IMG/VR virus record: IMGVR_UViG_3300033997_000243 | Location: 186,001 to 250,000 of that record | DNA: 64,000 nt | Reading direction: 5' to 3' (one strand) | Shown: positions 271 through 63,147 of the stretch, piece after piece | Layout of the letters: each line of letters begins with the position of its first letter | How positions within the stretch are numbered: position 1 is the stretch's first letter | Made by a program: the position numbers and the translations under genes | The notes under the pieces: generated by a model | Told to the model about the DNA's origin: nothing | Databases searched by the model: none | Seen by the model: only the letters and a program-made list of their open reading frames with translations

Positions 271-732
271 TTACTGTTGGTTCGTACCTTCAACACCGCG
301 CTGTTTGCGATCTTGTGTTCGTGCATCCAACCAATGCAATGCACTTACAATATGTTGCAGCGCTTGTTCATTGGAATTACAAGCGAACGGGCCAGCTTGA
401 AAACCACGAAGTCGGTGAGCGCATATTACCAAAAGATCTTCCATTTGAATTCCATTGACACCATGTTCGTTGATTGGGCCATTTTGGAAATTAATGGCGG
501 CAAGACAAATACTTTGTTCACCGTTAAAAGCGCTTACACTGTAAACATGATTTGCATTACCGTGAGTTGGTAAATCGTCAGCAGTTACAATTGTGTACTC
601 TGTTTTACGAATAGCTAAAACAGCTTGCTTTTGTTCGGCATCGTAATCTTCCATTGCCTGTGTAATCTTTTCAGCAGTAACTTCACCATCTACTGCAATG
701 AAAATAGTTCCTTTTGTTGGATCATCACTCAT
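271..732 (-). CDS. tad1: Tad1-family anti-Thoeris (gcADPR / cyclic nucleotide sponge) protein
   Basis: GNANHVY, INFQNG and DLLVICAHRLRGFQAGPF..N..AL.H...AL.W...R..DR..RGVEGTN match the Tad1 consensus recalled from Clostridium phage Tad1. Confidence 0.8.
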   Translation of the reverse strand: MSDDPTKGTIFIAVDGEVTAEKITQAMEDYDAEQKQAVLAIRKTEYTIVTADDLPTHGNANHVYSVSAFNGEQSICLAAINFQNGPINEHGVNGIQMEDLLVICAHRLRGFQAGPFACNSNEQALQHIVSALHWLDARTQDRKQRGVEGTNQQ

Positions 733-6301: not shown

Positions 6302-7561
6302 TTAAATTGCTACATCAGCTGGAATATGACCGCAGTGTTGATAACCTACTACGCGATAGTTTTGTTTACCAAGACCACGCAGATCAGTTTTTTGTTGAGG
6401 GCCAACACCAAAAGTAATTAACAGCGGCAGCGATTTAGAGTTTTCCAGATTGCTACCTTGTGTTTTGAATGCTTCGATATGGTTTTTGTATATGTGAGTA
6501 TCACCAACAAAAATATCCAGTTTACGAGGAATCATTCCGGTGACGGCAGCAACATAGCCATTTAGCATTGCATAGCTTGCTATATTAAATGGAGCGCCCA
6601 AAAATAAATCTTGACTGCGCTGGTACATGGCTAAACTTAATTCGCGTTTAGTCTCAACAAGACCGCTCATTGAAGCCAGAATTTTTAGCAAACTTACTTC
6701 GGACATTTCATACAATTCATTTTCAGTATATTCTACTGGAAAACCGTTGATTGTTGTTTGACCGTCAATTGTGTAAACATTATGAATTGCACGTTCTCCC
6801 ATAATGTTTTCGCCAGCATCGGCAGAACCAAATTGGAAAATTGTGTGACAGGCAGGTAATGCTTGCTTACCAATTTCAACCTGATCTTTTGGTGGCAATC
6901 CATCAACAGGAATTACGTTTGGATTCCAAGCATCCACAATAATACGACGACAATCTGGATAGTTCTTTAAACGATAGATCGCGTTTTTGATCTGATCAAA
7001 TTTGCGAATGAAATAATGCGAACGTACTTGAGTAGCAGGGTTATCAAAATACTCGTAAGAATAAGTTGATTGGCCTTGCAAGCGTGAATCGTTTTGATCG
7101 CAAACATCATCTGACAATGAACGTAAGTAATCAAACTTTGTTTCAAAGTAAGGATCTGTTGAGACAACACGATGAATTTCTTCACGACCTCGCCACTGCT
7201 CACCGTATACTGGGCCAAGATCGCCATTAGCATTTGCCCAACCATCCCAAATGTGAACATCTTCATCCAAAAGTTCTTGGATGTTTGTTTTGCCATCTAA
7301 AAACCAATGTAACTCTTTTGCGGTTCCCCTTAAAAACAATTGTTTGGTTGTAGGCATTGGAAAGCCGCTAAACAGATCTAAAGCTAAATGTTCACCAAAA
7401 GTTTTAATGGTGTCTTGCTGAGTTCTGTTAGATGAAGATGTGCCGTTGTTCAGAATTTTTTCGGCAAGAGCTAAAAAGTCAAAGTCAAATTGGTTTGCAG
7501 GAACTGCGTCACCAAATAATGCGTAACCTTGTTTTAATTTTCCAGGTGGAGATTTAGTCAT
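6302..7561 (-). CDS. thyA: thymidylate synthase with two insertions
   Basis: TTK, GDLGPVYGEQWR, RRIIVDAWNP, LPACH (catalytic Cys), YQRSQD.FLG.PFNIASY and GDTHIY motifs. Confidence 0.95.
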   Translation of the reverse strand: MTKSPPGKLKQGYALFGDAVPANQFDFDFLALAEKILNNGTSSSNRTQQDTIKTFGEHLALDLFSGFPMPTTKQLFLRGTAKELHWFLDGKTNIQELLDEDVHIWDGWANANGDLGPVYGEQWRGREEIHRVVSTDPYFETKFDYLRSLSDDVCDQNDSRLQGQSTYSYEYFDNPATQVRSHYFIRKFDQIKNAIYRLKNYPDCRRIIVDAWNPNVIPVDGLPPKDQVEIGKQALPACHTIFQFGSADAGENIMGERAIHNVYTIDGQTTINGFPVEYTENELYEMSEVSLLKILASMSGLVETKRELSLAMYQRSQDLFLGAPFNIASYAMLNGYVAAVTGMIPRKLDIFVGDTHIYKNHIEAFKTQGSNLENSKSLPLLITFGVGPQQKTDLRGLGKQNYRVVGYQHCGHIPADVAI

Positions 7562-7988: not shown

Positions 7989-8025
7989 TAGTTTTCTCCT
8001 GTATTAACCTTGGATTTACAGTATG
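7986..8025. repeat. 40-bp direct repeat, copy 1 (RBS plus putative promoter)
   Basis: cattagttttctcct-N10-tggatttacagtatg, repeated 460 bp downstream. Confidence 0.9.
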
Positions 8026-8448: not shown

Positions 8449-8485
8449 TAGTTTTCTCCTTAATTACCTATGGATTTACAGTATG
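8446..8485. repeat. 40-bp direct repeat, copy 2
   Basis: identical 15-nt outer blocks shared with 7986..8025. Confidence 0.9.
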
Positions 8486-8518: not shown

Positions 8519-8544
8519 AAAAAAAGCTGACCGAAGCCAGCTTT
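8519..8544 (-). terminator. intrinsic terminator closing the leader-family operon
   Basis: GCTGGC-TTCG-GTCAGC hairpin followed by 7 U on the minus strand. Confidence 0.8.
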
Positions 8545-8554
8545 AAATATTGGA

Positions 8555-8962
8555 TCATTGAAACTTAACGGTCTTACCCAAATCTTTTGTATTTACTGAA
8601 TACACGGAAGTGGATGGTGGACGTTTGAATTTAATTTCTTTTTGATCCACTGAAACAATTTGTACGGTAGCCACAGGTTTCCATGCTGGTTTTGCTTTGT
8701 CTGTGCCGATTTGTGCAAGTCTCTGCATTACATAAGTATTTCCAACTTTAGGTAACTTAGGTTTTGGCTTGCCTGTGACAGAAACTTTGTATTTATCGGC
8801 TTCTTTTATATCAGCCGCTAATTCTTTTTCAGCTTCTTTCAACTTGAGTTTGGCGTCAGATACTTTATCCTTAGACTTGGCAACTTTTGCCAAAAGTTGA
8901 GCATACTTTTTATCGTCCTTTAATTTGGATGGAACCGAACTTGTTGACACTAATACCTTCAT
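8555..8962 (-). CDS. leader-family protein (MKVLVSTSS), basic coiled coil plus small beta-barrel
   Basis: start reassigned to 8962 by the AAGGA SD and the shared leader. Confidence 0.75.
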   Translation of the reverse strand: MKVLVSTSSVPSKLKDDKKYAQLLAKVAKSKDKVSDAKLKLKEAEKELAADIKEADKYKVSVTGKPKPKLPKVGNTYVMQRLAQIGTDKAKPAWKPVATVQIVSVDQKEIKFKRPPSTSVYSVNTKDLGKTVKFQ

Positions 8963-8972
8963 TTTTATTTCC

Positions 8973-9470
8973 TTATTTCGATTTCTTAACATCTTTTAAA
9001 ATATAGGCAGCTAATTCAGCATACCCACCAGAATTTTTACCAGCACGATCTACTGGTTTGCGTAATTCAGTTAGTTTGTCAATTTGCTTTTCAACAGCAG
9101 ACAATTCTTTACGTAATTGTTTTTGTTTTTCCTTTAATGCTTTAAGTTTAGCATCATTCAGAATTTTGTCTGTGGTTTCAATATTCTTTTCCTCAGAACT
9201 TTGCTTTGAAGGTTTTACATAACTATCAAATATAAACTTAGATCCAATTTCAAGTATTGGTATAACTTTGGTCACACTGGAATTACCAAAAGCATTCTTT
9301 ACCGTAATTTTTCCAGCACGTATGCTTTTAACTCGCACAGCTTTTTCGTGTTTAATCCACTGTCCTACAGTGCGGCCTCTTACCGCAAACTCTTGCTTTT
9401 CTCTCAGCCAATAAACTTTTCCAACTTCAGGCATACTACGCTTAGCGCTTGTTGAGACTAGAATTTTCAT
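8973..9470 (-). CDS. leader-family protein (MKILVSTSA), small beta-barrel plus coiled coil
   Basis: shared leader; AAGGA SD. Confidence 0.75.
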   Translation of the reverse strand: MKILVSTSAKRSMPEVGKVYWLREKQEFAVRGRTVGQWIKHEKAVRVKSIRAGKITVKNAFGNSSVTKVIPILEIGSKFIFDSYVKPSKQSSEEKNIETTDKILNDAKLKALKEKQKQLRKELSAVEKQIDKLTELRKPVDRAGKNSGGYAELAAYILKDVKKSK

Positions 9471-10051
9471 TTTGATTCCTTGAGTTTTTTAAACATTGCC
9501 TGAATCTGTTTTTGCTTTGGAGCAAGTTCATCATGTAGACGATTAAACTCTTCTTCAGACTTTGCTTTAAGAATTTTATAATGATACTTGTGAATTTCGA
9601 TCAATCTCATTATAACTTCTTTTTCACGCTCTACAGCATTTGGGCCATTTAGAGCTTGTGTGATTTCTCTAAGTGCTTGCTGTGCGAGATTAATCCAACG
9701 TGTTTTATCAACGTCAGGCTCCCAAGTATAAACAGCTTCCATATATTCATCGGAAATTTTTTGACCAGCTGTTCTTGGTTTGTCAGTAGTGGCCTTTGGT
9801 TTTCTTTTATTTGGATCAAATGGAATAACAGAAGATTTACTTGAATAGCCACCTATCTGTTTGAATTCTTTTTCCTTTGATGCCCAAACTTTAATATCAG
9901 CTTCACTCATTCGTCTGGCTAAAAAATCGTCCATTGCACTATCTGCCAGCTTAGCCACTTGTCTATCTTCAGATAGTGTTTCGCGTTCAATAGCTTTATA
10001 CGCCAATTGTCTGATTGTAGGTCTAGCACTAACGCTGACTAAAATCTTCAT
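9467..10051 (-). CDS. leader-family protein (MKILVSVSA), helical
   Basis: shared leader; TGATG coupling to the upstream stop. Confidence 0.75.
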   Translation of the reverse strand: MKILVSVSARPTIRQLAYKAIERETLSEDRQVAKLADSAMDDFLARRMSEADIKVWASKEKEFKQIGGYSSKSSVIPFDPNKRKPKATTDKPRTAGQKISDEYMEAVYTWEPDVDKTRWINLAQQALREITQALNGPNAVEREKEVIMRLIEIHKYHYKILKAKSEEEFNRLHDELAPKQKQIQAMFKKLKESK

Positions 10052-10650
10052 CACACATCCTTTAATAAGTCTGCCGAAATGAACTGTCCTTTTTCGAGAA
10101 CAGTTTTGGGAACTATTTTAATACTGGAGTCTAAATATTTAGCAATCTTTTTTGTTGCATATATTGCCTCAAGTTTTCCTTTTCCTTTCCCTATTATTTC
10201 TTTTTCCTTCCACACCCAAGGTTCATCACGCCAGTCGAAAATTTTTGACACACTAGGATCTTTGTTCTTGCTGAGTGAATTCAGATGATCGATCAGAGAA
10301 TCTATATCGAATGCTCCAGCTTCGACATCAACTTTATAAAGTACACCAAAATCTTGCATCGATTTTGATCCGTTTATCTTTATCTTGGCGAATTCCTCAG
10401 CAACCTCACGATCAATAGAAAAACTAGAATCACCAAATACTGCGGTTCTTTTTAAAGTTTCAAATGATTTGGCCGGAAGTTTCATTCCTCTATAAGCTGT
10501 TTGTTTCATTTTAGTTATAAACATTGGAAACGCGGCTTTCATTTTGGGAACTAGATCTTTGTCATTTGTATGAATCCAATCAGACAATAACTCAATCTTT
10601 TCTTTGTTTAAGGATAAGGACTCTGAACTTAAATTTACTAAAATCTTCAT
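10051..10650 (-). CDS. ADP-ribosyltransferase (R-S-E clade) with MKILVNLSS leader
   Basis: AYRG, SSFS..REVAEEFA, GVLYKV and EKEII motifs; start at 10650 by GAGGA SD and ATGA overlap. Confidence 0.7.
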   Translation of the reverse strand: MKILVNLSSESLSLNKEKIELLSDWIHTNDKDLVPKMKAAFPMFITKMKQTAYRGMKLPAKSFETLKRTAVFGDSSFSIDREVAEEFAKIKINGSKSMQDFGVLYKVDVEAGAFDIDSLIDHLNSLSKNKDPSVSKIFDWRDEPWVWKEKEIIGKGKGKLEAIYATKKIAKYLDSSIKIVPKTVLEKGQFISADLLKDV

Positions 10651-10925
10651 TTCATTTCCTCGAAAACGACATTCCAATCTTGTTCAAGTTGATGACGATC
10701 TGGATCAGTATCATAATAAGCGGCAATCGCATAAACTAATTCGCCAATATCACCGGTCAACGTAAATGTTTTATCGACAATTGCCATTGCTTTTGGCATT
10801 CTGGAAATTTTTACCTTTCTACCAACTGCTTTTATTTCGTCTGAAATTTGTTGAGTCGATGAATTCTTTTTAGCCTTAACATGAGCAACAAAAGTACGAG
10901 CAGACAAACTAACTAAGATTTTCAT
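10647..10925 (-). CDS. leader-family protein (MKILVSLSA)
   Basis: start at 10925 with GGAG SD; shared leader. Confidence 0.7.
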   Translation of the reverse strand: MKILVSLSARTFVAHVKAKKNSSTQQISDEIKAVGRKVKISRMPKAMAIVDKTFTLTGDIGELVYAIAAYYDTDPDRHQLEQDWNVVFEEMK

Positions 10926-11238
10926 TAGATTCTCCAGAATAGTTTCCAAGACTTGAGTAACTATAATAAAGTGTTACACAAGTTGGACTGCCTGTACTAA
11001 TGTGACCATCATTTAATTGTGCGCCAAACTTTTCATTAAATTGCCTTGGAATATCAACACACATTAGTTGAGGCACCAACTCTTTCTGAATTTCACGATC
11101 AGTAACCAGCAGTGAAAGATAAATGGCTCCGCGTAAATCTTGTTTTGGTGGGTCAATAGCTACTTTTAAAAATGAAGCACCTACTTTACTAAGTGCTGGA
11201 ATGCTTGCAAATGCCTCAACTAATTTTTCTGTACTCAT
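10909..11238 (-). CDS. hypothetical protein (no leader)
   Basis: AAGGTG SD. Confidence 0.6.
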   Translation of the reverse strand: MSTEKLVEAFASIPALSKVGASFLKVAIDPPKQDLRGAIYLSLLVTDREIQKELVPQLMCVDIPRQFNEKFGAQLNDGHISTGSPTCVTLYYSYSSLGNYSGESNENLS

Positions 11239-11247
11239 ATCACACCT

Positions 11248-11736
11248 TTAATAACTATCAACAGCGGAATAGTCTATGTTATTCAAATCAAGTACGTGAG
11301 TAATGCCTTTAGCTACAGATAGATCGACTGGATCAATTGGATCATTAATTCGTATTGCTGCATTTATCAGATCATATGCAGACCTGAATTTATACTCATT
11401 GCTTACGGTTATAGTTAAATCTTGTAAAATTTCTTTAGCTTTATTAAATGCCGCAGCAGAAACTTCTTGACGGATTGTTTTAATTCTAGGAAACGACTCT
11501 CCTGTATGGAAATTTTTAATTGCTTCAGTTAATTCAGAGAATTGTTCAGGGAGAATTGTATGCAATCGTTTACCCAAAGAATTGCAAACTTTTTCAGTCA
11601 AATAGATAATGTTTCTTAACTCTGGAGTTGGCCCTTTGACTTTCTTAATAAGAGAACTTAATTGTTTATTGAATTTGGTAATCTGTTCACCTGTTGTTAA
11701 GTGCTTAGGTGCGCTTAAACTTACTAAGATCTTCAT
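11248..11736 (-). CDS. leader-family protein (MKILVSLSA), paralogue of 11781..12254
   Basis: shared leader; AFNKAKEIL and DPVDLS..KGITHVL match the neighbour. Confidence 0.75.
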   Translation of the reverse strand: MKILVSLSAPKHLTTGEQITKFNKQLSSLIKKVKGPTPELRNIIYLTEKVCNSLGKRLHTILPEQFSELTEAIKNFHTGESFPRIKTIRQEVSAAAFNKAKEILQDLTITVSNEYKFRSAYDLINAAIRINDPIDPVDLSVAKGITHVLDLNNIDYSAVDSY

Positions 11737-11752
11737 TTTTCTTTCCTTAACG

Positions 11753-11777
11753 AAAATATGGGCCGAAGCCCTATTTT
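11753..11777 (-). terminator. C(UUCG)G hairpin between genes (leaky terminator or stabiliser)
   Basis: GGGC-TTCG-GCCC followed by ATATTTT. Confidence 0.55.
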
Positions 11778-11780
11778 ATA

Positions 11781-12254
11781 CTACACCTTTATTCCGGCCA
11801 TTTTCAGTGCATCAGTAACGCCTTTATATTTTGAAAGGTCACTTACTGGATCTACGTTATCTAAAAGCCTTTTACAGGCGATTGCTAAATTTTTAGCGGT
11901 TTCCCAAGTTTCAGCTTCTGATCCAGTAAGCTTTGTTTGTGCAACAATTTCTTTCAATTTTTTGAAAGCTGTTTGACCTAACTTCAAAAACTTCGGATCT
12001 ACATTGCTGTAATCAGGAGTTATATTTGAGGCACTTGTATCACGAACTTGATCTGTAATTTCCACCATCAAATCGTAAGATTTTTTCAGGGAAGGGTGGC
12101 CACGAAATCCATTACACAACATTGTGCAATTGTTTAATATTGCCCAATGATCAGAATCAAAATGCTTAAACTTTTTGAAATACTTTTTAACAGCGGCATC
12201 TGTCGTAGCCAAAGTAACTTCAGATTTTGCACTTAAGCTTACTAAAATTTTCAT
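11781..12254 (-). CDS. leader-family protein (MKILVSLSA), paralogue of 11248..11736
   Basis: shared leader; AFKKLKEIV and DPVSDLSKYKGVTDAL. Confidence 0.75.
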   Translation of the reverse strand: MKILVSLSAKSEVTLATTDAAVKKYFKKFKHFDSDHWAILNNCTMLCNGFRGHPSLKKSYDLMVEITDQVRDTSASNITPDYSNVDPKFLKLGQTAFKKLKEIVAQTKLTGSEAETWETAKNLAIACKRLLDNVDPVSDLSKYKGVTDALKMAGIKV

Positions 12255-12273: not shown

Positions 12274-12289
12274 AGGGGCCGAAGCCCCT
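12274..12289 (-). terminator. C(UUCG)G hairpin between genes
   Basis: AGGGGC-TTCG-GCCCCT. Confidence 0.6.
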
Positions 12290-12293
12290 TGTA

Positions 12294-13328
12294 TTAATTG
12301 TTACCCAAGAAATCTGCTGTAGTAATATGGCTTACTTCAACAACATTGCTTGTTTGTTTATTTGTTGCAACAAGTTTAGCAACGAATGTACCTTCAACCG
12401 CAGCAGTCGGCTGAACGGGTGGCGTAAGTACAGGTTTGAACCAAGCCAAACTTGTACTGTTCTGCACACAACGGAATTGTGGATCGCTTCCACTGTCAAC
12501 AACGTCAGGAACTGCCGCACCAATATCAGTTGTAAGACGCAGAATATATTTCGCACCATCCCACAACAAACGCCAGATCAGCGGATTGGTTTCAGTACCA
12601 TCTGCACTACGATACATAATCAAATCGACATCGTAAAGTTCTGTAATGTTTGTGATAGTTTCGTGTTTACTACCAACACTCCAAGTTACATTCCACTGCT
12701 CGTTATTATTAGCTAACGTCAGAACAGAAGTATTCTCAGACATTACACGACCTTGATCCCATTGACTACGACGATAACTTGTTAACGCCAATTCAATCAA
12801 ATCGTTTTTAGCAATTGAGTATTTCGTACCTGGAATTCCAGTTCCAACATAAAGCGTTGGAGTACCACCAGCTTTAAGGAAACGGCTATCAATTGGTGCA
12901 ATCAAACCGTAAACAGTTTCACCTTCTGGAATAATTGGTTCGGGAGTAACGGGCACAACGATTACACCAGCTTCCTCGATCACTTGTTGAATTTCTTCTT
13001 CATAGTATTCGTTTAAGAAATTTTGAACAGCAGAATTTAATACTGTTGTTTGGCCAGCCGAAGTTGTATTAAACTTCTCTGAAATATCTAACCAATTTTC
13101 AACAATGTTGTTGCGTAATGCTTCAATATCCTCTGGAATTACAGGAGGAAAGCTTTTAGCATCAGTCAAGGCAACTTGTACGGCTCGTCCACCAACTTGT
13201 TGTCCAACAAACATAACTGGATTAAGTAACGGCACTACTTTAATATCGGACGCAGTAATCTTTTTAAGTTTGGCCAATTGATCAAAGCCAGAAATGATTA
13301 CTGTTGCGTATTGAAAACTAACTTTCAT
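12294..13328 (-). CDS. hypothetical protein, probable virion structural protein
   Basis: 344 aa; beta-rich C-terminal domain after a PVTPEP linker; GGAG SD. Confidence 0.5.
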   Translation of the reverse strand: MKVSFQYATVIISGFDQLAKLKKITASDIKVVPLLNPVMFVGQQVGGRAVQVALTDAKSFPPVIPEDIEALRNNIVENWLDISEKFNTTSAGQTTVLNSAVQNFLNEYYEEEIQQVIEEAGVIVVPVTPEPIIPEGETVYGLIAPIDSRFLKAGGTPTLYVGTGIPGTKYSIAKNDLIELALTSYRRSQWDQGRVMSENTSVLTLANNNEQWNVTWSVGSKHETITNITELYDVDLIMYRSADGTETNPLIWRLLWDGAKYILRLTTDIGAAVPDVVDSGSDPQFRCVQNSTSLAWFKPVLTPPVQPTAAVEGTFVAKLVATNKQTSNVVEVSHITTADFLGNN

Positions 13329-13362: not shown

Positions 13363-13869
13363 TTATGTAGATAGGGCCGAAATTAGATTCTGCACAAACT
13401 TTTCATAATCAACTTGACCTGTTTTGGTAGCGCTTGCTGTCCTTGCTAATAAATCTGCTTTGTCATTTCCTTCTATTCCGCTGTGACCTTTTACCTTTGT
13501 CATTATTAATCGACCAGACTTATAAAGCTCGTATAATGGTTTGATCAATTCTAAATTTTTGTAGGTTCCGCCTTCAGGTTTTCTCCAATTGTTTTTGGCC
13601 CAACCTTTTGCCCACACAGTAACGCAATTGATTGCATATTGACTATCTGTTAATACTTCAATAACGCAAGTTTTATCCTTAGACAATTTGAAAGGATATA
13701 AACACGCAAGCAACTCCATCTGATTATTTGTAGCATGTCTAAAGCCTTTTGAATATTCTTTTGTTAGTGTTTTACCAGATTTTTCTTTTATCAAAAATAA
13801 TCCAATTCCAGAAGGTCCGGGATTGTTGATGGATGAACCATCAGTATAAGCCAGTATTTTAGACATCAC
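13363..13869 (-). CDS. rnhA: ribonuclease HI
   Basis: YTDGS..NPG, TNNQMEL, TDSQY, KVKGHSG..GN..AD.LA motifs. Confidence 0.95.
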   Translation of the reverse strand: MMSKILAYTDGSSINNPGPSGIGLFLIKEKSGKTLTKEYSKGFRHATNNQMELLACLYPFKLSKDKTCVIEVLTDSQYAINCVTVWAKGWAKNNWRKPEGGTYKNLELIKPLYELYKSGRLIMTKVKGHSGIEGNDKADLLARTASATKTGQVDYEKFVQNLISALST

Positions 13870-13885: not shown

Positions 13886-13911
13886 CTAATTTATAATCAT
13901 ATATTTACAGT
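13886..13911. promoter_or_regulatory. divergent control region: plus-strand TAATTTATA and minus-strand ACTGTAAAT candidate promoters
   Basis: both motifs recur upstream of other genes on their respective strands. Confidence 0.45.
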
Positions 13912-13924
13912 TTCGAGGTGAACT

Positions 13925-14215
13925 ATGGGACTTCCAGTAATAGTAAAGGGAAATAACAGCACAGGCCATCCACCTGGTTTTCCACCAACTCCAGCCGTTC
14001 AAGCAAGTACAAAAGTATTTGCTGCAAAACAACCTATTGTGCGTCAAGGTGACAAATATAAAATACATTGCTTTAACGGCAGTTGTCATGTGCCTACAGT
14101 GGTAAAAGCAAGTACAAAAGTTTTCATTCAAGGAAAAGGTTGTACACGATTGGGCGATAAACTTAGCTGCGGTGATACAGCAAGTGGTGGAATTTCAAAT
14201 GTGAGGGCAGGTTAA
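13925..14215 (+). CDS. PAAR-repeat spike tip protein (T4 gp5.4-like)
   Basis: GH..FPP, three PAAR-like repeats (STKVF..K.PIVRQGD), H/C metal ligands, RLGD.LSCG. Confidence 0.9.
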   Translation: MGLPVIVKGNNSTGHPPGFPPTPAVQASTKVFAAKQPIVRQGDKYKIHCFNGSCHVPTVVKASTKVFIQGKGCTRLGDKLSCGDTASGGISNVRAG

Positions 14216-23201: not shown

Positions 23202-24725
23202 ATGGATGATATTACAATTCGTATTGAAGCATTTGAAAACAGATCTGATCTTGATGGAGCAAGAGCAAAAACTTCAGAATTCGGATCAGATGTTGCTTTC
23301 GTACAAGTAGAAGAACCAGATCCGCTTAATATAAAATTTGCGTACAATGCCCAATCAGGTGTTTTATCTTTAATCCGTGGGCCTGATGATATTATTCAGG
23401 CCACTGGTTTTCTTACGCAAAAAAGTTTGGGAACTGGAAGAAGAGGAAAGAAAGGAAAAAGAGGCAAAGACGGTCGTGATGGGAAAACTGGTTACGATGG
23501 TCGTGATGGAAAATCTGGATGTCCTGGAATTCAAGGTGTAAAAGGAAAGAAAGGACTTCCAGGTCGTGATGCTGATGATGGCCCAATTGGGCCAATAGGT
23601 AAAGCTGGTTGTGGTGGTGCTGAAGGTGAAGAAGGTGAAAGAGGAAATAAAGGAATAATCGGCAATGAAGGATCTCAAGGTTTAATGGGATCTAGTTGCA
23701 AGCAAGGGCCGGATGGCCCTGACGGTGAAAAACCTTTGGAAACAGTTTTATTTTCTGACGTTCCACCAGTAGATAATCTGCTTGCTTTTATTTGGGCAAA
23801 ACCTGTCAACAGAGATCAAGTAGATCCAACAGATCCATTGCCGCCAATAGATACTCCGTCACCTTTAAATGGAAGAGTAGATAGTTTATCAATGAATGTT
23901 CCTCCGGTCGGTGCTGGTTGGTATCAAGCAATTCTTTATTTTAAAGTGAATTCTTTAAGTGGTGGAGTTGGGCCTTTTAACTATAAATGGTCTGGTGATT
24001 TTTCGACAAACGCAAATCTTTCAGTAGTTGATACTGGAATGACATCTGCAAACTTGAATTTGAAGTGTAGAATTTATATTGCTGGAACAGAAACCAGAAA
24101 AATTACTGGTGGAATTCGTTGTACAGTAACAGACGTAGGTAACGGCAACAATCCACTACTGTTAGATGCCACTTACACATTCAACATTGTTGCGACGGCT
24201 TCTGGAGGCGGTGACAGTGGAGGCGGTGGTGGAGGCTGTATCGTTTTTGGTCAACGTGTTAATTTAGTAAATGGTGAGCAAATTCAAGTTCAATCTATTT
24301 TACACGGTGACAGTTTAATCGGCGCAAGCATAGAAAGTTTGCCGGACAGCTCTAATGGAAACTCTAAATTTTTAGATTGGTTCACTTCTGATCTTAAATC
24401 GAAAAATACAACTGTCACGGCTATGTCTGTTAAACACGGAACTTACCATAGTTACTACAAAATAAATAATGTTTTGAAAATAACTTTGGAAGAGAACATG
24501 CTTTGCTTGCGCGGAGGCTATTGGTCTTTTAGACGAGTTAAAGATCTTCGTGTTGGAGACTATTTATATCATCGAACAGAAGGTGCTAAAGAAATTCTCA
24601 GCATTGAACAAATAAGTGAACAAGTTAAGACAGTATCTTTAGATGTTGAGACATCAGACACTTACTATGTTGAAGATTATTTAGTTCACAATCTGGATGT
24701 CGGTGGGCCTGTGATTAAGAAATAG
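23202..24725 (+). CDS. collagen-like tail fibre protein with a C-terminal Hint domain
   Basis: about 33 Gly-X-Y triplets, a beta domain, poly-Gly linker, then CIVFG...LVHN. Confidence 0.8.
   Translation: MDDITIRIEAFENRSDLDGARAKTSEFGSDVAFVQVEEPDPLNIKFAYNAQSGVLSLIRGPDDIIQATGFLTQKSLGTGRRGKKGKRGKDGRDGKTGYDGRDGKSGCPGIQGVKGKKGLPGRDADDGPIGPIGKAGCGGAEGEEGERGNKGIIGNEGSQGLMGSSCKQGPDGPDGEKPLETVLFSDVPPVDNLLAFIWAKPVNRDQVDPTDPLPPIDTPSPLNGRVDSLSMNVPPVGAGWYQAILYFKVNSLSGGVGPFNYKWSGDFSTNANLSVVDTGMTSANLNLKCRIYIAGTETRKITGGIRCTVTDVGNGNNPLLLDATYTFNIVATASGGGDSGGGGGGCIVFGQRVNLVNGEQIQVQSILHGDSLIGASIESLPDSSNGNSKFLDWFTSDLKSKNTTVTAMSVKHGTYHSYYKINNVLKITLEENMLCLRGGYWSFRRVKDLRVGDYLYHRTEGAKEILSIEQISEQVKTVSLDVETSDTYYVEDYLVHNLDVGGPVIKK
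24237..24692 (+). other. Hint (intein-like) domain 1
   Basis: block A C-I-V-F-G; block F/G VSLDVE...YYV..YLVHN; residue after HN is Leu; block B His replaced (TLEE). Confidence 0.85.
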
Positions 24726-24736
24726 GTAGGTATTTT

Positions 24737-25381
24737 ATGTTGACGAAAGTTCCAACTAAATTAATTTCAGCGCCTCAAGGAACAAACGGTCAAAGTCTTG
24801 TTGTTCAGGATAAAAGAATAACAGCTCAATCTACTGCAACTCAAACAGTTTCACCTATAGAAGATTGGTTTTATGATGCAAGCGTTGGTGTTCTCACAAT
24901 TCGTTTGTTGAATGGAACAACTCAAACTTTAGGTGGATTTCCAATATTATCTGATATTCCTGAAGGCCCACAAGGAGCACAAGGAGAACCAGGAATTGAT
25001 GGAAAAGATGGTCGTGATGGTCGTGATGGTCGTGATGGCGAAGCTGGTTGTGTAGGTGCAGCTGGTGAAAAAGGTGATGACGGTGATGATGGCCGTGACG
25101 GATTAGAAGGGCCAGTTGGCCCACCAGGTATTCAAGGATGTGAAGGCCCAAGAGGAAAACGTGGGCCAAAAGGTGAAGATGGAGATCAAGGCCCACCTGG
25201 AAAACAAGGTCTTCCAGGAATTGAAGGGCCACCTGGAAAAATGGGAAAACAAGGGCCACCTGGAAGAATAAATATTATTGTAAGTGAAACTGATCCAGGT
25301 CCAAGTTTAGGTAATGGTGGAATTTGGGTTAATCCTTTAATTGGTCAGATAGATGATGATACTGATCAATTTTTTACGTAA
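24737..25381 (+). CDS. collagen-like fibre protein
   Basis: about 33 Gly-X-Y triplets; (GGTCGTGAT)3 DNA repeat; C-terminal DPG...G.IWV. Confidence 0.85.
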   Translation: MLTKVPTKLISAPQGTNGQSLVVQDKRITAQSTATQTVSPIEDWFYDASVGVLTIRLLNGTTQTLGGFPILSDIPEGPQGAQGEPGIDGKDGRDGRDGRDGEAGCVGAAGEKGDDGDDGRDGLEGPVGPPGIQGCEGPRGKRGPKGEDGDQGPPGKQGLPGIEGPPGKMGKQGPPGRINIIVSETDPGPSLGNGGIWVNPLIGQIDDDTDQFFT

Positions 25382-30272: not shown

Positions 30273-30292
30273 AAAGGGGCTTCGGCCCCTTT
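30273..30292 (+). terminator. C(UUCG)G hairpin, possibly bidirectional terminator
   Basis: AAAGGGGC-TTCG-GCCCCTTT. Confidence 0.65.
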
Positions 30293-34323: not shown

Positions 34324-34545
34324 ATGCCAAAGGCAGTTGTTTTGAGAGTCAGGGACGTTAAAAACGTCCTTGATCCTTTTCATATAAAGAATTTTCATTT
34401 AGGTGGCTGGCGTGTTCGTCATGAAAACAAATGGATCAGAATGGTTCCAGAAAATACTCTGATTAAAAATCCAGATCATGATCCGGCTGTACACGCACCA
34501 GATGATACTGAATTTCCGTTATATACACAGGTGGTATCAGAATGA
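34324..34545 (+). CDS. small virion-associated protein (start MPKAV)
   Basis: GGGAG SD; R..N.W pattern like the N-terminus of 26910. Confidence 0.55.
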   Translation: MPKAVVLRVRDVKNVLDPFHIKNFHLGGWRVRHENKWIRMVPENTLIKNPDHDPAVHAPDDTEFPLYTQVVSE

Positions 34546-35315
34546 TAACTAGACTACCTTTAGCAATGATCAACGCTGGATCAACAAGTTTAGCAGGACA
34601 AAATGTTACAGTTGTTCAGCCGGGAGTATTAGCTGCACAAGATCCGTCTGCAACTGTTCAACCTGCTGTTATACAAGGAACGTATGACGCGGATAGTGGA
34701 ACAGTTACAATAGTCAATGCTGATAATTCGATAGTTTTAATTTCTGGTTTTCCAACAATAAGAAGTTTACCAACTGGACAACGTGGGCCAGAAGGTAAAC
34801 AAGGTATTTCTGGAGTAGCAGGAAGAAATGGTCGTGATGGTCGTCCTGGAGAACAAGGTTGTCCTGGAGTAAAAGGTGATCGTGGCTTGCGAGGCCCAAT
34901 TGGGCCAGAAGGCCCACGAGGGCCGCAAGGAGAAATCGGCCCCAAAGGTGACAAAGGTGACAAAGGTGACAAAGGTGATGCAGGTATTGATGGCCTTGAA
35001 CCAGAATATGTAAAGACAAGTCGTGGAGCATCTATTTATTTACAAAGAAGCGGTGGAACAATTCAAAGTGGATTTTTTGAAAATGCTCTACAAGACAGAA
35101 CAATAACTTTACTGTTTCCGAGAAATTTAATAAACGGTGTTGTAAGTATTGTATTGTTCTTTAAGAATCCAAGTAGCTACCAAGCTCTGAATTATGAAAT
35201 AGGTGAATATTTCTACGATGATTTAGAAATTGGTGGTGTAACAATAACTCTTAAAGGAACTCCACCTGCACAGCTTGAGCCTTGGCAGTTCTGGTGGTTT
35301 GTAATGGGCGATTAA
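34542..35315 (+). CDS. collagen-like fibre protein with a C-terminal globular domain
   Basis: about 25 Gly-X-Y triplets; (AAAGGTGAC)3 repeat; shared N-cap. Confidence 0.85.
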   Translation: MITRLPLAMINAGSTSLAGQNVTVVQPGVLAAQDPSATVQPAVIQGTYDADSGTVTIVNADNSIVLISGFPTIRSLPTGQRGPEGKQGISGVAGRNGRDGRPGEQGCPGVKGDRGLRGPIGPEGPRGPQGEIGPKGDKGDKGDKGDAGIDGLEPEYVKTSRGASIYLQRSGGTIQSGFFENALQDRTITLLFPRNLINGVVSIVLFFKNPSSYQALNYEIGEYFYDDLEIGGVTITLKGTPPAQLEPWQFWWFVMGD

Positions 35316-35833: not shown

Positions 35834-36748
35834 ATGGACACACTATTAATAGGGCTAGTTAGTGAGTGTTTGAGTAAAGCTGTAGCTTTGGGACTGACGG
35901 CATCCAATAAAATAGTTTTAGCTGTAGGATCTACACAAAACGAAACAGCTTTAATTTATGTCAGTGCTGTTGAACCCACTGGGCCAGAACTTCCACTAAA
36001 TTTTATGTGGATAGTTTCAGATTCTAACAGTGCAGATTATCAGAAGATTCTGAGAAGAACTTCAAAGACTGCAAACTTTCCTTACCAAAATACTTACGAA
36101 TATCCAACGGTATATGCAAACGTAATAAATACATTTCCTGTATATGATGCTGTTGACGGTTTTATTCGCCCTGCATTAGAAAATCATAGATATTCTGTAG
36201 GAAATGCTCATGCTGCTACTCCAACTCAAATTGGAGCAGTTAATATAAATGGCGATACAATGCTTGGCAGTTTAAAAGCCAGAGCAAATTGGAGATCTGT
36301 TCCATTACAACCAGAAGAATTTATTCCTCTGCAAAAAATGACAGATAGCCTTAATAGTCAGACTCAAGGCTTTTACACTATTCTAATGCAGTTATTTAAT
36401 AGAATAGGTGCAGTAGAAACAACTAACGCTCAGTTAGCTCAAAGAATTACAGCTTTAGAGACAACTGGTGGTGGCCAAATAGATCCAAATCTTGTTCCAC
36501 GTACTTATGTACATGAACAAGCAGAAGCAGAACCTACTTGGATTATAAATCACAATCTAGGTACTCAATTCTTAATTGTACAACATTGGGTTCATATTAA
36601 TACACCTGATGGGATAAAATTGGAATTGGCTGGAGCGGAACAAGTTGTTATAGTAAATGACAATTTTGTTTTAATTGATCATACGATACCAGCAACAGGA
36701 ATAGTTGTGTTGTTGGAAGCAGGGTTAGAAGTAGTTCCAGAGGAATAA
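35834..36748 (+). CDS. virion structural protein with H.Q...W.I.HNLG domain
   Basis: GN.H..TP.QIGA..GD.M.G.L fibre motifs, coiled coil, HNLG domain. Confidence 0.65.
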   Translation: MDTLLIGLVSECLSKAVALGLTASNKIVLAVGSTQNETALIYVSAVEPTGPELPLNFMWIVSDSNSADYQKILRRTSKTANFPYQNTYEYPTVYANVINTFPVYDAVDGFIRPALENHRYSVGNAHAATPTQIGAVNINGDTMLGSLKARANWRSVPLQPEEFIPLQKMTDSLNSQTQGFYTILMQLFNRIGAVETTNAQLAQRITALETTGGGQIDPNLVPRTYVHEQAEAEPTWIINHNLGTQFLIVQHWVHINTPDGIKLELAGAEQVVIVNDNFVLIDHTIPATGIVVLLEAGLEVVPEE

Positions 36749-37992: not shown

Positions 37993-38526
37993 ATGGGCGG
38001 CTTTTTTGAGTATTTATCAAGTTCAGCCCCAAGCACAGTGATACTTGCAGTATTACTTGTTGCCTGTGGTTGGTATTTGTATAGCCACGGCTTACCTGCT
38101 ATTCAAAACCAAAAGACGTTCGAGGAAGAACGGGAAAAGTGGCAGAAAGAAAAAGATGAATTAAATGAGGTTATTAAAAACCACGTAACGCAAGATTCGA
38201 CAGAACAACTTCTGTTAGATCTAATAAAAACATGCCAAGCAACTCACGAAATGGTATCTAGCTTAGTAGTAGAAACTGATAAAGAGTTTGTTGAATTGGC
38301 AGGTAAACTGGATAAACTTATCGGTACATTGAAAGAAGTTTCGGCAAGCAGTGATAGCACATTATTGCGAAGGGTAGAAGGACTAGATGCCGAACTCAGG
38401 CTTATAACCCAACAAGTCAGTGCAGTAAGTTACCGATTAGCAACAATAACTGGTTTGTTGATCGGAAATCAACAGAGGTCTGCGCTATCTGATTTAATGG
38501 GGAACGACGTAAAGGATCTCAAATGA
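37993..38526 (+). CDS. single-TM coiled-coil membrane protein
   Basis: TM segment VILAVLLVACGWYLY followed by heptads. Confidence 0.6.
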   Translation: MGGFFEYLSSSAPSTVILAVLLVACGWYLYSHGLPAIQNQKTFEEEREKWQKEKDELNEVIKNHVTQDSTEQLLLDLIKTCQATHEMVSSLVVETDKEFVELAGKLDKLIGTLKEVSASSDSTLLRRVEGLDAELRLITQQVSAVSYRLATITGLLIGNQQRSALSDLMGNDVKDLK

Positions 38527-51685: not shown

Positions 51686-51699
51686 GGGGCTTCGGCCCC
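51686..51699 (+). terminator. C(UUCG)G hairpin
   Basis: GGGGC-TTCG-GCCCC with no clear U-tract. Confidence 0.45.
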
Positions 51700-53545: not shown

Positions 53546-54055
53546 ATGGCTACAGAAAATTACTTGGTAAAACATTCAGAGCAAATTTCTGTAGCCAATG
53601 CCTTCTCTGCGAAATTTCACAATAGTCTGAAAATCGAAGCACATGATGGCGGCTACAAGTTTAATTTACTTGCAGATTTTAGTATGGATTTTTGTTGGGA
53701 CATAGAAAATAATTGCCCTATACTTCCAACAGATAATAAGTTACGTAAGTTCAAGATCGCGACGTTAACAGCAAGAGAAGGTTTTGAATCTGATCTTATT
53801 AGTAGTCCTCGATTCCTATGGTCGCTGTTTCCTCCATTTGGTAGTGGACTAAAGGCATCGGTTATTCATGATCTACTTTATAGAAATGATATTCCTTCTC
53901 CATCAGGGCAATTTTACACGCAGAAAGATGCGGACTTAATTTTTAAAATAGGTTTAATTGTTGAAGGCGTAACCGACAGAAAATCTTGGGCAATGTACAA
54001 TGCACTTCGTTTAGTTGGATTTCGTGCTTGGGAAGAAAACAGGGGAATGAAATGA
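53546..54055 (+). CDS. DUF1353-family protein
   Basis: GF.SDL.S.PR..W..FPP.G....A.V.HD.LY and AD..F...M..A.R..G. Confidence 0.85.
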   Translation: MATENYLVKHSEQISVANAFSAKFHNSLKIEAHDGGYKFNLLADFSMDFCWDIENNCPILPTDNKLRKFKIATLTAREGFESDLISSPRFLWSLFPPFGSGLKASVIHDLLYRNDIPSPSGQFYTQKDADLIFKIGLIVEGVTDRKSWAMYNALRLVGFRAWEENRGMK

Positions 54056-54516
54056 AATACGCTCTAATTGTTTTATCAATGTTTCTTTTTGGATGTGCTA
54101 GTGCGCCAGAGCCAAGAGAAATACAGACCAAAAAGATTGCAGAATTCGTACACAAAGAAGTAACTCCTGTGAGTATTCCAGAAGCCTTCACGCATGATGT
54201 AGGTAAGTACAAAGACGCCAACGGTAAAACATGGGCGCTTGTTGATCCAGATGATTTGGTAAAAATAGAGCAAGCGTATATCAGTGCTGAATCTAATGCA
54301 GCACTTGTGGAACAGGCCAATTTAATTTTAGAATTAACTGTCCAACGCGCAAACTTAATTCGTGAGCTTGCAGAGCTAGAGGAATACAGAGCATTGAAAA
54401 TGGAAGTTGTTTTAAAGGATGAAAGGGAAAGCAGAAGGGAAGAACAGTTGCGGAATAGTATTGAAAGCATAACACTGAAAATAATTACTGCACTTGCATT
54501 AGTCGTAGCAATATGA
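54052..54516 (+). CDS. lipoprotein, putative outer-membrane spanin
   Basis: start MKYAL at 54052; lipobox LFG-C; coiled coil; hydrophobic C-terminus. Confidence 0.6.
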   Translation: MKYALIVLSMFLFGCASAPEPREIQTKKIAEFVHKEVTPVSIPEAFTHDVGKYKDANGKTWALVDPDDLVKIEQAYISAESNAALVEQANLILELTVQRANLIRELAELEEYRALKMEVVLKDERESRREEQLRNSIESITLKIITALALVVAI

Positions 54517-55406: not shown

Positions 55407-56279
55407 TCAGTCATTCAATATTTGTTTATTGAATATAAATAAGTATTCATTGTCTGATGGAACAGGGCTACCGAACTCACACTGAACAACCTTTGGAAAT
55501 GCAATTCCTTGTAAGCAAAAACCAATTGAGTCCAAGTCCAAAGCTTCCGTCAGCTCTACTATATTATTCAAATCTTTTGAGTTTGGTGCAATTCGAGTTA
55601 CCCAAAATTTAGTCTGTCTCTTATCAAGTTTAATGCCTTCAAAGATGCCAGTGATTCTTTCTATAGTGGTATAAGAATCCAAGAAAAACAGTTTTGGTTG
55701 TTTTTCGCGCCACTCTTTATATACCCTTATATCCAGCAATGTAGGATCTGCTGGAATAACTGCTGAAATAGATTTAACGCTGATTGCGAAATATTCCGAA
55801 GATGCAGTTCCCATGTGAAAAGCAAAGGAAATAGGTGCGTTAAAGAAATCACACAATTTCTTAGTAACGTGCTTTATCTTTGGTCGATTTAAAATTTCTT
55901 GATTTTGTGAATAAGAAATATGTTTGGCCAAATGTGCAGGTTTTGTATTATGCTTAGCACGAATAGCCTCAATATTATTTTCAGCGCGATTTATTTCACT
56001 TTTAAAAATTGATTCAAGTGAAACGCTATGCAAATCACACACTGATAATAATGTAATCAGTGTACCTGCTGCTTCCTGGTCTACTTCACCTTTTGGTCGG
56101 CTGTAAACGTGATCTAAAATACTATCCATTTGATCCCGCGATAATCCTATAGCCTGACACAATTCTACACATTCTTCTGCAAAACGAAAACTGCGTTCAC
56201 TCTTGTCATTTGTGTGTTCAACACCAAAACAATTAGTAAGCCAGTTTCTAACCCTGACTTTCATCTGCTGTAAATTCAT
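55407..56279 (-). CDS. MazG-like nucleotide pyrophosphohydrolase fused to an unknown domain
   Basis: RF.EE..EL.QA and V.QE..G motifs; start MNLQQ by GGAG SD. Confidence 0.7.
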   Translation of the reverse strand: MNLQQMKVRVRNWLTNCFGVEHTNDKSERSFRFAEECVELCQAIGLSRDQMDSILDHVYSRPKGEVDQEAAGTLITLLSVCDLHSVSLESIFKSEINRAENNIEAIRAKHNTKPAHLAKHISYSQNQEILNRPKIKHVTKKLCDFFNAPISFAFHMGTASSEYFAISVKSISAVIPADPTLLDIRVYKEWREKQPKLFFLDSYTTIERITGIFEGIKLDKRQTKFWVTRIAPNSKDLNNIVELTEALDLDSIGFCLQGIAFPKVVQCEFGSPVPSDNEYLFIFNKQILND

Positions 56280-56769
56280 CAACTTTCTCCTGTGTGCCAA
56301 TCACATCCGACATAAATTGTTTTGCTTTTAACACAACATGAGTGCAGCCTTGTTGCTCAACACAACTGGTTAAAAAGTTTGCCCAGTTCTTGTTCATCAT
56401 GGTTAAGAATTCTTTTGGAGATCCGCGCTTAGCGTAACGCTGCATATACTCCACTTTTAAATTCTTTTCAGGATAAACCAGAGTGAAGTCAATTCCAGCA
56501 TCTACCAAAGCTTGACGCACAGCATCATGCGAACTAACAAGCAAATAATCACATTGGTAACGAGCTTCTTCAATGTGTTTAATGTAATTTGCCGGAAAAT
56601 CATCTTTAGGGAATTTTGAACTGTCGCTATCCATAACAGTAAAGCCTAATTCCTGTTGACGATTGAAAAAGTGAGTTTTGCCAATCCCAGGAAATCCACA
56701 AATAATTTGAGCGCTTTTTTGCGGAACTGACTTAGGTTTGTTTTTGTTTAATGATACCAAAATTTTCAT
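56248..56769 (-). CDS. P-loop nucleotide-kinase-like protein with MKILVSL leader
   Basis: IICGFPGIGKT, DSDSS.F and R...RG motifs. Confidence 0.75.
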   Translation of the reverse strand: MKILVSLNKNKPKSVPQKSAQIICGFPGIGKTHFFNRQQELGFTVMDSDSSKFPKDDFPANYIKHIEEARYQCDYLLVSSHDAVRQALVDAGIDFTLVYPEKNLKVEYMQRYAKRGSPKEFLTMMNKNWANFLTSCVEQQGCTHVVLKAKQFMSDVIGTQEKVDEFTADESQG

Positions 56770-57896: not shown

Positions 57897-57914
57897 ACGA
57901 GGCCGAAGCCTCGT
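57897..57914 (-). terminator. C(UUCG)G hairpin terminator
   Basis: ACGAGGC-TTCG-GCCTCGT followed by TT. Confidence 0.6.
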
Positions 57915-60728: not shown

Positions 60729-60748
60729 TTGGGAGCCTAAGCCCCCAA
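60729..60748 (-). terminator. intergenic hairpin
   Basis: TTGGGGGC-TTAG-GCTCCCAA on the minus strand. Confidence 0.4.
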
Positions 60749-63109: not shown

Positions 63110-63147
63110 AAATCTCTCCTATTACTAAAGAAAGATTTACAGTTTTA

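Follow-up and report, generated by a model that had tools for sequence, protein, structure and literature searches.

A nine-residue N-terminal leader, MK[IV]LV[SN]xS[AS], is carried by seven of the eight tightly packed minus-strand open reading frames (ORFs) at positions 8555-12254 of a 64,000-nucleotide stretch of viral DNA. This stretch, hereafter the window, covers positions 186,001 to 250,000 of the 319.5-kb contig IMGVR_UViG_3300033997_000243. The leader is real and under selection at the peptide level. It is spread through the whole lineage of jumbo phages related to Pseudomonas phage PaBG, is specific to N-termini, and is genomically linked to the genes of the head maturation protease and the major capsid protein (MCP). 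Since leader genes flank the protease gene and the core of the leader recurs at a site in the MCP, the leader most likely addresses its cargo to the head. A targeting-and-cleavage model, to which we give a probability of about 0.65, is the best-supported explanation: the leader would be a portable propeptide that sends proteins to the assembling prohead.

The baseplate and fibre proteins encoded in the window share 32-36% identity with their counterparts in Phage NCTB, Pseudomonas phage PaBG, and Erwinia/Dickeya jumbo phages. This means that the source is a distant, uncultured PaBG-like jumbo myovirus. A near-identical DNA search of GenBank phages gave no match to the window, and no description of the leader in PaBG-like phages was found in the literature, the coverage of which was incomplete.

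The leader peptide and its copies in the window

The tagged ORFs, designated T1 to T7 (Table 1), encode proteins of 92-199 residues and start at 8962, 9470, 10051, 10650, 10925, 11736, and 12254. All seven starts had been given in a preliminary description of this DNA, made from the sequence alone, and were confirmed; a Shine-Dalgarno-like (SD) AAGGA or GAGGA lies 6-9 nt 5' of each (7/7). For T1, the start at 8962 is favored over that at 8992 by an AAGGAA SD site and by the leader itself, the gene callers being split between the two. A degenerate DNA pattern for the leader peptide gave five matches in the window and none in 100 shuffles (0.00 expected). The third positions of the leader codons vary, and the Ser residues at positions 6 and 8 are drawn from both the TCN and the AGY codon boxes. 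This means, as had been supposed earlier, that selection acts on the peptide and not on the DNA. The DNA 5' of the tagged genes is unrelated between copies, except for the UUCG hairpins before T6 and T7.

Conservation at the DNA or RNA level, as a translation-initiation enhancer or as a recombination site for cassette exchange, would suit an AT-rich, unstructured start-codon region and a locus that exchanges its cassettes. This explanation has a very slight chance of being correct, since synonymous sites are free to vary across both Ser codon boxes and the substitutions between phages (I/V, S/A, L/T/V) are conservative at the amino-acid level. In addition, the one indel that was mapped used the repeat ACACCTTTA and not the leader.

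When residues 1-9 were removed, T6 and T7 were the only pair that remained related (29% identity, E 1e-8, z 13.3); each of the remaining pairs of tagged proteins gave z<=4.2, which is the level of shuffled sequences. The earlier statement that similarity mostly stops after residue 9 agrees with this, the two paralogues being the exception. All seven proteins of the cluster are basic (pI 8.9-10.1, Lys 9-21%), in agreement with the earlier remark that many cargoes are Lys-rich. Scanning the window with a position-specific scoring matrix (PSSM) of the leader added an eighth copy, T8, which starts at 56769; the eight leader proteins represent at least seven unrelated families.

The predicted structure of T7 is informative about the position of the leader. 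The AlphaFold2 (AF2) model, built from a five-member family alignment, is a helical bundle with a predicted local distance difference test (pLDDT) score of 79.6, whereas residues 1-10 have a pLDDT of 34 and no secondary structure. In this model, the leader is an appendage ahead of the T7 fold and outside it. A fold search of the PDB with the model returned generic helical bundles only and no structural neighbor. Among the five members of the T6/T7 family (21-82% identity), no contiguous block other than the leader is invariant. In T8, the leader and a Lys/Pro-rich linker precede the β1 strand and Walker A motif (GFPGIGKT) that belong to the domain itself.

A shared N-terminus could also be left over from a common ancestor of paralogues that diverge fast, or could form the first strand of a fold that the cargoes have in common. 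T6 and T7 are indeed paralogues, and MKILV... N-termini are common as the β1 strand of Rossmann-type proteins. A scan of IMG/VR with the degenerate leader DNA mostly matched Rossmann-type MKILVTGxSG genes; therefore, the first five residues of the leader by themselves are not diagnostic. Nevertheless, common ancestry or fold has hardly any likelihood as the explanation. T6 and T7 aside, there is no similarity past residue 9, and the cargo folds differ (helical bundle, ADP-ribosyltransferase, P-loop, and β-rich domain with coiled coil). The only usable model, that of T7, shows a disordered leader. Furthermore, it outlives the loss of the adjoining 65 residues in one cargo and is borne by 54 families, as described below.

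The leader contains only three or four hydrophobic residues, no RR, and no Cys, as is read directly from the sequence. A Sec, Tat, or lipoprotein signal peptide was judged unlikely, as there is no hydrophobic core of at least 10 residues, no twin-Arg, and no lipobox Cys; the leader had already been called too short and too polar for Sec.

Leader genes in head modules and the capsid-protein site

Loci of PaBG-like phages, 80 around MCP genes and more than 100 around head maturation protease genes, were scanned with the leader PSSM. The motif was found at 49 of 3920 first-ATG positions, compared with 8 of 10043 internal Met positions. The leader-bearing ORFs encode 93 distinct proteins in 54 sequence families and lie mostly beside the protease and MCP genes. 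In the relatives' loci they flank the protease gene on the strand of the MCP and protease genes, with up to six per locus. Proteins of 600-900 residues and an LRV/HEAT-repeat protein are among the 93, and in head modules the leader occurs on large proteins of 400-900 residues. In NCTB, MKIISISA and MKIVSISA begin two proteins of pI 10 immediately upstream of the scaffold-like and MCP genes. An orthologue of T8 with the leader (47% identity, E 5e-45) is encoded in the head module of another relative (L046), between the protease and the scaffold/MCP genes. PaBG gp084 (L037:4266-5954; 562 residues), which starts with MHTSLSAV, contains a type IB topoisomerase core (Pfam Topoisom_I, 5e-15); the position of its gene in the head module suggests that this topoisomerase may be packaged. 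The seven copies of the preliminary description are all present, but T8, the eight head-module copies described next, and the lineage-wide spread had been missed.

The head module of the source phage itself was reached with a broadened protease alignment, at 51-72 kb of the contig (L164), and was extended with an identical ENA contig (L239). Its MCP had not been reachable through homology searches with the PaBG and NCTB MCPs, nor by walking left of the window. The order of genes is a 264-residue protease, eight basic leader proteins, an acidic 777-residue scaffold-like protein (pI 4.1) upstream of the MCP, a 233-residue protein, and a 364-residue MCP. The eight leader proteins (L239:3819-9056; pI 8.3-10.3) start with MKIKVFVSQSS, MKIQVMLSESA, MKIKVFISSSN, MKILVSLCT, MKVNILISESA, MKIRVFTSTSA, MKIRVFISESS, and MIISLSVSA. 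S-x-S-[AS], or a sequence close to it, forms the end of each of these leaders. Two sub-types of the leader are present in one genome: the head-module form, MKI[KR]VF[IVT]S.S[AS], is one residue longer than the cluster form, MKILVSLSA. Among the head-module genes, L239:5895-6227 (DUF5754) carries the short form.

A related site is present in the MCP. In the MCP of the source phage, FLSLSA↓EQKR (the arrow marks the putative cut) is found at residues 71-76, that is, at 20.9% of its length. This LSLSA site lies in the variable linker that joins the capsid core to the conserved N-terminal region. The MCP of a sister phage has FASLSN↓S at residues 69-74, that of NCTB has VTSA↓EQK, and that of PaBG has RRAPSA↓REE at residue 72. 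Removal of 72 residues from the PaBG MCP corresponds to a mass loss of 19.0%. Maturation is reported to remove about 20% of the mass of the PaBG MCP, and several PaBG virion proteins are reported to be processed (PMC7412058). The core of the leader thus appears, on sequence grounds, to be mirrored at the likely maturation cleavage position of the MCP. The preliminary description had named S-x-S sites in the MCP as something to look for, and this one is at the expected cleavage position. It had also placed the cleavage site of the leader at S-x-S. A site of S-x-S type is retained here, but the cut is likely to fall after residue 9, following S-x-S-[AS], and not inside S-x-S.

The distribution of the core motif points in the same direction. 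[LIVMFT]S.S[AS] occurs at 1.24 per 1000 residues in head-module proteins versus 0.23-0.34 elsewhere, and is almost always N-terminal. PaBG gp83 (320 residues, pI 10.3), which starts with MLIKINLLEAVAA and is encoded in the head module beside the scaffold-like gene, is among 14 abundant virion proteins.

The protease of the source phage (L164:9965-10759) is 51% identical to the NCTB copy, the first sequence of the query. The copies in relatives are annotated as head maturation protease, and that of Erwinia phage Y3 matches phrog_18299. Invariant EH(D/N) and YS.G motifs are present in the PaBG-like protease. It should be mentioned that NCTB BN7874_230 (L154:11986-12768), in the head module, is annotated as 'Phage endolysin' and yet shares 50% identity with the head maturation protease of PaBG; the endolysin label is probably mistaken.

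The leader consists of M-K-[IV]-x-[VI], in which hydrophobic residues alternate, with S-x-S-[AS] behind it. In the targeting-and-cleavage model, the hydrophobic, β-strand-like half would dock to the scaffolding core or to the protease. The prohead maturation protease would then cut after S-x-S-[AS], the type of site that would also part the N-terminal delta region from the mature MCP. The released basic cargo would remain with the DNA and would probably be delivered into the next host. The Lys-rich proteins, those with a helical bundle, the P-loop enzyme, and a probable ADP-ribosyltransferase resembling Alt would all be part of this cargo. We infer that the leader binds and is cut off and that the cargo stays in the head and is injected; the effector roles of the cargo are inferred in the same way. 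More tentative, with the chances lying somewhat below even, is the proposal that a single peptide serves as both the head address and the cleavage site of a non-glutamate prohead protease (hydrophobic-S-x-S-[AS]↓) across the PaBG-like family.

Several observations weigh against the targeting-and-cleavage model. The cluster is about 125 kb away from the head module and adjoins PAAR and baseplate genes. It belongs to a minus-strand block of non-structural genes, RNase H and thymidylate synthase among them. The late promoter of phage T4, TATAAATA, is not enriched, and no late promoter could be defined. In the closest cultured relatives that were compared, the canonical leader was found neither at the syntenic region (NCTB) nor in the head module (Erwinia phage Y3). 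The one-residue difference in length means that the head-module and cluster leaders might be handled differently. The evidence from virions is indirect and comes from a relative: the leader of PaBG gp83 is a diverged and not a canonical form. The S-x-S-[AS] core is low in information, and a 5-mer PSSM often peaks at a conserved core strand of the MCP, VVATSS. A permutation test of phage-specific matching between the leader and the MCP linker was not significant (p 0.14). Finally, the protease family has no Pfam match, and alignment of its profile with T4 gp21 by hhalign gave a probability of 0.3%; its specificity is therefore not inferable from homology. Nothing relevant was matched when the profile was compared with the PDB.

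The leader might instead be a head-assembly peptide on proteins that are auxiliary scaffold or core components, broken down or driven out when the head matures, or permanent internal structural parts, and not injected effectors. The linkage to protease, scaffold, and MCP genes fits this equally well, and many of the cargoes are simple Lys-rich or coiled-coil proteins. There is also a precedent: the core proteins gp67, gp68, and gp22 of phage T4 are cut up and largely exit the head (PMC9026906). We consider this unlikely, since probable enzymes are among the cargo (ADP-ribosyltransferase and P-loop proteins; the type IB topoisomerase of PaBG), for which a scaffold role is not obvious. Rapid cassette turnover is typical of host-interaction genes and not of structural parts, and a basic pI suits retention on DNA.

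The location of the cluster raises the question of other destinations. Its co-transcription with RNase H in the non-structural block, the position of T8 among DNA-metabolism genes, and the resemblance of the leader to a generic amphipathic β-strand would agree with a role elsewhere in the infected cell. The leader could then mark proteins for degradation, dock them to a phage chaperone or a replication factory, or let a protease outside the head activate them at a set time. This is improbable: it leaves unexplained why, in dozens of phages, leader genes are concentrated in head modules on the strand that encodes the MCP and the protease, why the same core is present at the MCP junction, and why the T8 orthologue lies inside a head module.

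Loading of the cargo on the tail, baseplate, or spike, as by the signals of type VI secretion system (T6SS) and extracellular contractile injection system (eCIS) effectors, is suggested by the PAAR (13925-14215), gp25-like, and gp6-like baseplate wedge genes. These adjoin the cluster and are conserved in two relatives (L032 and L034). The eCIS (PVC, AFP) and T6SS signals are likewise portable N-terminal labels on diverse effectors, with contractile-apparatus genes adjacent. However, they comprise about 50 disordered residues or distinct motifs and load a tube or spike, whereas the linkage here is to the head protease and MCP. Tail loading seems very improbable, since the PAAR and baseplate neighbors are divergently transcribed and most leader genes accompany protease, scaffold, and MCP genes, not tail genes. 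Moreover, the motif is scarce in the tail/baseplate block (0.23 per 1000 residues), and the lumen of the tail tube of a DNA phage is occupied.

Cargo turnover and the surroundings of the cluster

The same locus was found in three related phages, between the RNase H and 344-residue protein genes and the thymidylate-synthase block. A 99%-identical contig (L001) is without T6 and its hairpin. This is a clean 541-bp indel (window 11240-11780), which in the comparison of L001 with L002 is flanked by the direct repeat mentioned above, outside the leader. L032 retains T7, the untagged ORF U, T5, and the T4 gene, whereas T1 and T2 are replaced by an unrelated 318-residue protein starting with MKILIATSA. 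L034 (a 286.6-kb contig) has five tagged genes, with the leaders MKILISLNS, MKILISLSA, MKIKISVSS, MKVLISTSA, and MKINISMSS. T1 is absent from both L032 and L034.

In the T3 orthologues of L032 and L034, residues ~8-72 (about 65 residues) are gone, and the leader is fused directly to the conserved C-terminal domain. The T5 orthologue is 92% identical in L032 and 61% identical in L034, where its leader is MKIKISVSS. In the T2 orthologue of L034, the leader is kept at 7/9 residues versus 46% identity elsewhere. Distant orthologue pairs generally conserve the leader far above the cargo (e.g., 8/9 versus 32%). The leader is retained through cargo turnover. A metagenome scan with the 344-residue neighbor gave only the already known variant contig. 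By analogy with the internal-protein locus of phage T4, the window cluster is proposed to be a fast-turnover cargo locus.

The tagged proteins had no significant match in Pfam or PHROG, and an ESM Atlas search with T2 was uninformative. The product of the T4 gene (10051-10650) is probably an ADP-ribosyltransferase (ART) of the R-S-E type, to judge from its motifs and structural neighbors. It has YRG at residues 53-55, SSFS at 75-78, and EKE at 149-151, all invariant in a 69%-identical orthologue (P0002). Its feature and structure neighbors in the ESM Atlas belong to the ART, ADPrib_exo_Tox, Mod_ADP_RT, and DRAT families (template-modeling score about 0.5). A weak alignment with the Vis toxin (4xzj) runs through YRG (E 0.45). 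The product has no Pfam match, that is, no significant hidden Markov model (HMM) support, and its AF2 model was unusable (pLDDT 37). For these two reasons the assignment is only probable. An ART had been named among the cargo before; the ESM Atlas matches and the R-S-E motif make this plausible, although HMM support did not follow. Searches of cultured phages by tblastn with the ART-like gene and with a 408-residue leader family found nothing. ORF U was found together with the ART-like gene in the source phage, L001, and L032, and neither is present in L034. U could be an inhibitor or a chaperone of the ART. As for T8, which lies among DNA-metabolism genes, its match to AAA_33 is weak.

The cluster is apparently read from a ACTGTAAAT-type promoter upstream of RNase H, through the UUCG hairpins, to the terminator at 8523-8544 (Table 1). 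ACTGTAAAT has six matches in the window versus 1.25 expected. Those at 8014-8022, 8474-8482, 13903-13911, and 63135-63143 on the minus strand are 25-45 nt upstream of minus-strand gene starts. This makes the motif a candidate promoter for the non-structural block. Sites of sigma-70 type are no more frequent than expected by chance. The GGGGCUUCGGCCCC-type UUCG hairpin is also found in intergenic gaps at 30276-30289 and 51686-51699 (plus strand) and at 57899-57912 and 60732-60745 (minus strand); it is likely to be a terminator or an RNA-stability element.

Table 1. Positions of the leader genes of the window and of the features around the cluster.
Feature	Position	Strand	Leader	Description
Hairpin with T-run	8523..8544	-		terminator-like; closes the operon of tagged genes after T1
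T1	8555..8962	-	MKVLVSTSS	135 residues; Lys-rich, pI 10.0, 21.5% K
T2	8973..9470	-	MKILVSTSA	165 residues, basic; small β-rich N-domain and K-rich coiled coil
T3	9467..10051	-	MKILVSVSA	194 residues, basic
T4 gene	10051..10650	-	MKILVNLSS	199 residues; probable R-S-E ADP-ribosyltransferase
T5	10647..10925	-	MKILVSLSA	92 residues, basic
U	10909..11238	-		109 residues; untagged acidic ORF in the cluster, pI 5.0
T6	11248..11736	-	MKILVSLSA	162 residues; paralogue of T7; presence/absence cassette
GGGGCUUCGGCCCC hairpin, second copy	11759-11772	-		before T6
T7	11781..12254	-	MKILVSLSA	157 residues; predicted helical-bundle protein
GGGGCUUCGGCCCC UUCG hairpin	12274..12289	-		between the 344-residue protein gene and T7
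Acidic protein gene	12294-13328	-		344 residues; conserved upstream neighbor of the cluster, anchor in all relatives
RNase H gene	13363-13869	-		conserved upstream neighbor, anchor in all relatives
ACTGTAAAT motif	13903..13911	-		candidate promoter; upstream of RNase H, the 344-residue protein gene, and tagged genes
T8	56248..56769	-	MKILVSLNK	173 residues; K/P-rich linker, then P-loop NTPase/kinase-like domain

Other genes of the window are noted here. Thymidylate synthase (6302-7561, minus strand) has 419 residues, and its orthologues have 397 residues in L034 and 471 in NCTB. The 153-residue product of 271-732 (minus strand) is assigned in the gene table to the Pfam Acb2_Tad1_hairpin family and is a candidate nucleotide sponge acting against CBASS or Thoeris. 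A tail-module protein (37993-38526, plus strand) starts with MGGFFEYLSSSAP; it has S-x-S-A at residue 8 without the MKI.V part. In 53986-54516 (plus strand), an internal start, MKYALIVLSMFLFGC, resembles a lipoprotein signal with a lipobox and is followed by a coiled-coil-like region; this may be a spanin or an exclusion lipoprotein. Fibre-like proteins with collagen-type Gly-X-Y repeats are encoded at 23202-25381 and 34542-35315 (plus strand). The protein encoded at 35834-36748, inside the tail-fibre block, matches a PHROG annotated as HNH endonuclease.

Comparison with known systems

The capsid-targeting sequence (CTS) of phage T4, 10 residues long, heads divergent, basic internal proteins encoded at a variable locus; it is recognized by the scaffolding core and cleaved by gp21 (PMC9026906, PMC3012670). 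Alt of phage T4, an ART, is packaged and ejected (PMC9026906, PMC3012670). The resemblance to the CTS of IPI, IPII, IPIII, and the T-even internal-protein (IP) locus is close in arrangement. In both cases, a leader of about 10 residues opens proteins that are mostly basic and have no other relationship, the genes turn over rapidly as a cluster, and an ART accompanies them (Alt in phage T4, the probable ART here). In phage T4, the end of the leader is the type of site that the prohead protease uses on the capsid protein, and the same would hold here. The differences are equally clear. The T4 leader is of the MKTYQEFIAE type and is cut after L/I-x-E, whereas the leader described here has no Glu and does not resemble it in sequence. 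The present system is found in a PaBG-like jumbo myovirus lineage, has a protease with no detectable match to gp21, and places its leader also on proteins of 400-900 residues. By homology, it does not belong to the T4 CTS/gp21 system. The preliminary description had proposed a T4-like targeting leader on a modular set of cargoes. This is partly supported by the clustering with head genes, the MCP site, PaBG gp83, the T7 model, and the turnover of the cargo.

In phiKZ, 201phi2-1, and SPN3US, internal or ejected head proteins lose N-terminal propeptides to the prohead protease (gp175/gp245), and the MCP and cargo have the same motif (PMC10052503). These are also jumbo phages, and their single cleavage motif for MCP and cargo is comparable with the shared core found here. 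Unlike the present leader, their propeptides are long and variable and are cut at (S/A/G)-X-E or A-X-E, with Glu at P1; these phages are of a different family. In the present leaders and the residues behind them, no position is consistently Glu, and the MCP junction ends in S-A or S-S, which does not correspond to (S/A/G)-X-E. The EH(D/N) and YS.G motifs of the PaBG-like protease are reminiscent of the His/Ser prohead proteases (HK97-type), but no sequence or profile match was obtained. The maturation site of herpesvirus assemblin is (V/L/I)-X-A↓S, which has a small residue at P1 and a hydrophobic one at P3. L-S-A↓ here shares both features, which is only a lead.

How phages choose the proteins inside their heads is little known outside T4 and the phiKZ group. 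If the targeting-and-cleavage model is correct, the CTS principle would be extended to a new lineage and a new protease specificity. Neo-N-termini after ...S-A would then be expected in the virion proteomes of PaBG, NCTB, or Lu11. The leader would also be reusable as a short tag for loading foreign proteins into capsids far roomier than that of phage T4. If, in addition, one peptide acts as both address and cleavage site throughout the PaBG-like family, the packaged and injected repertoire of mostly uncultured phages would be readable from genome sequence. ARTs, P-loop enzymes, a type IB topoisomerase, and HEAT/LRV-repeat proteins would be part of this repertoire, together with dozens of orphan families. 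An address label of this kind would make it simple to pick out, in metagenomic jumbo phages, candidates for injected proteins of host takeover and counter-defence; 54 cargo families are already visible in the loci examined.

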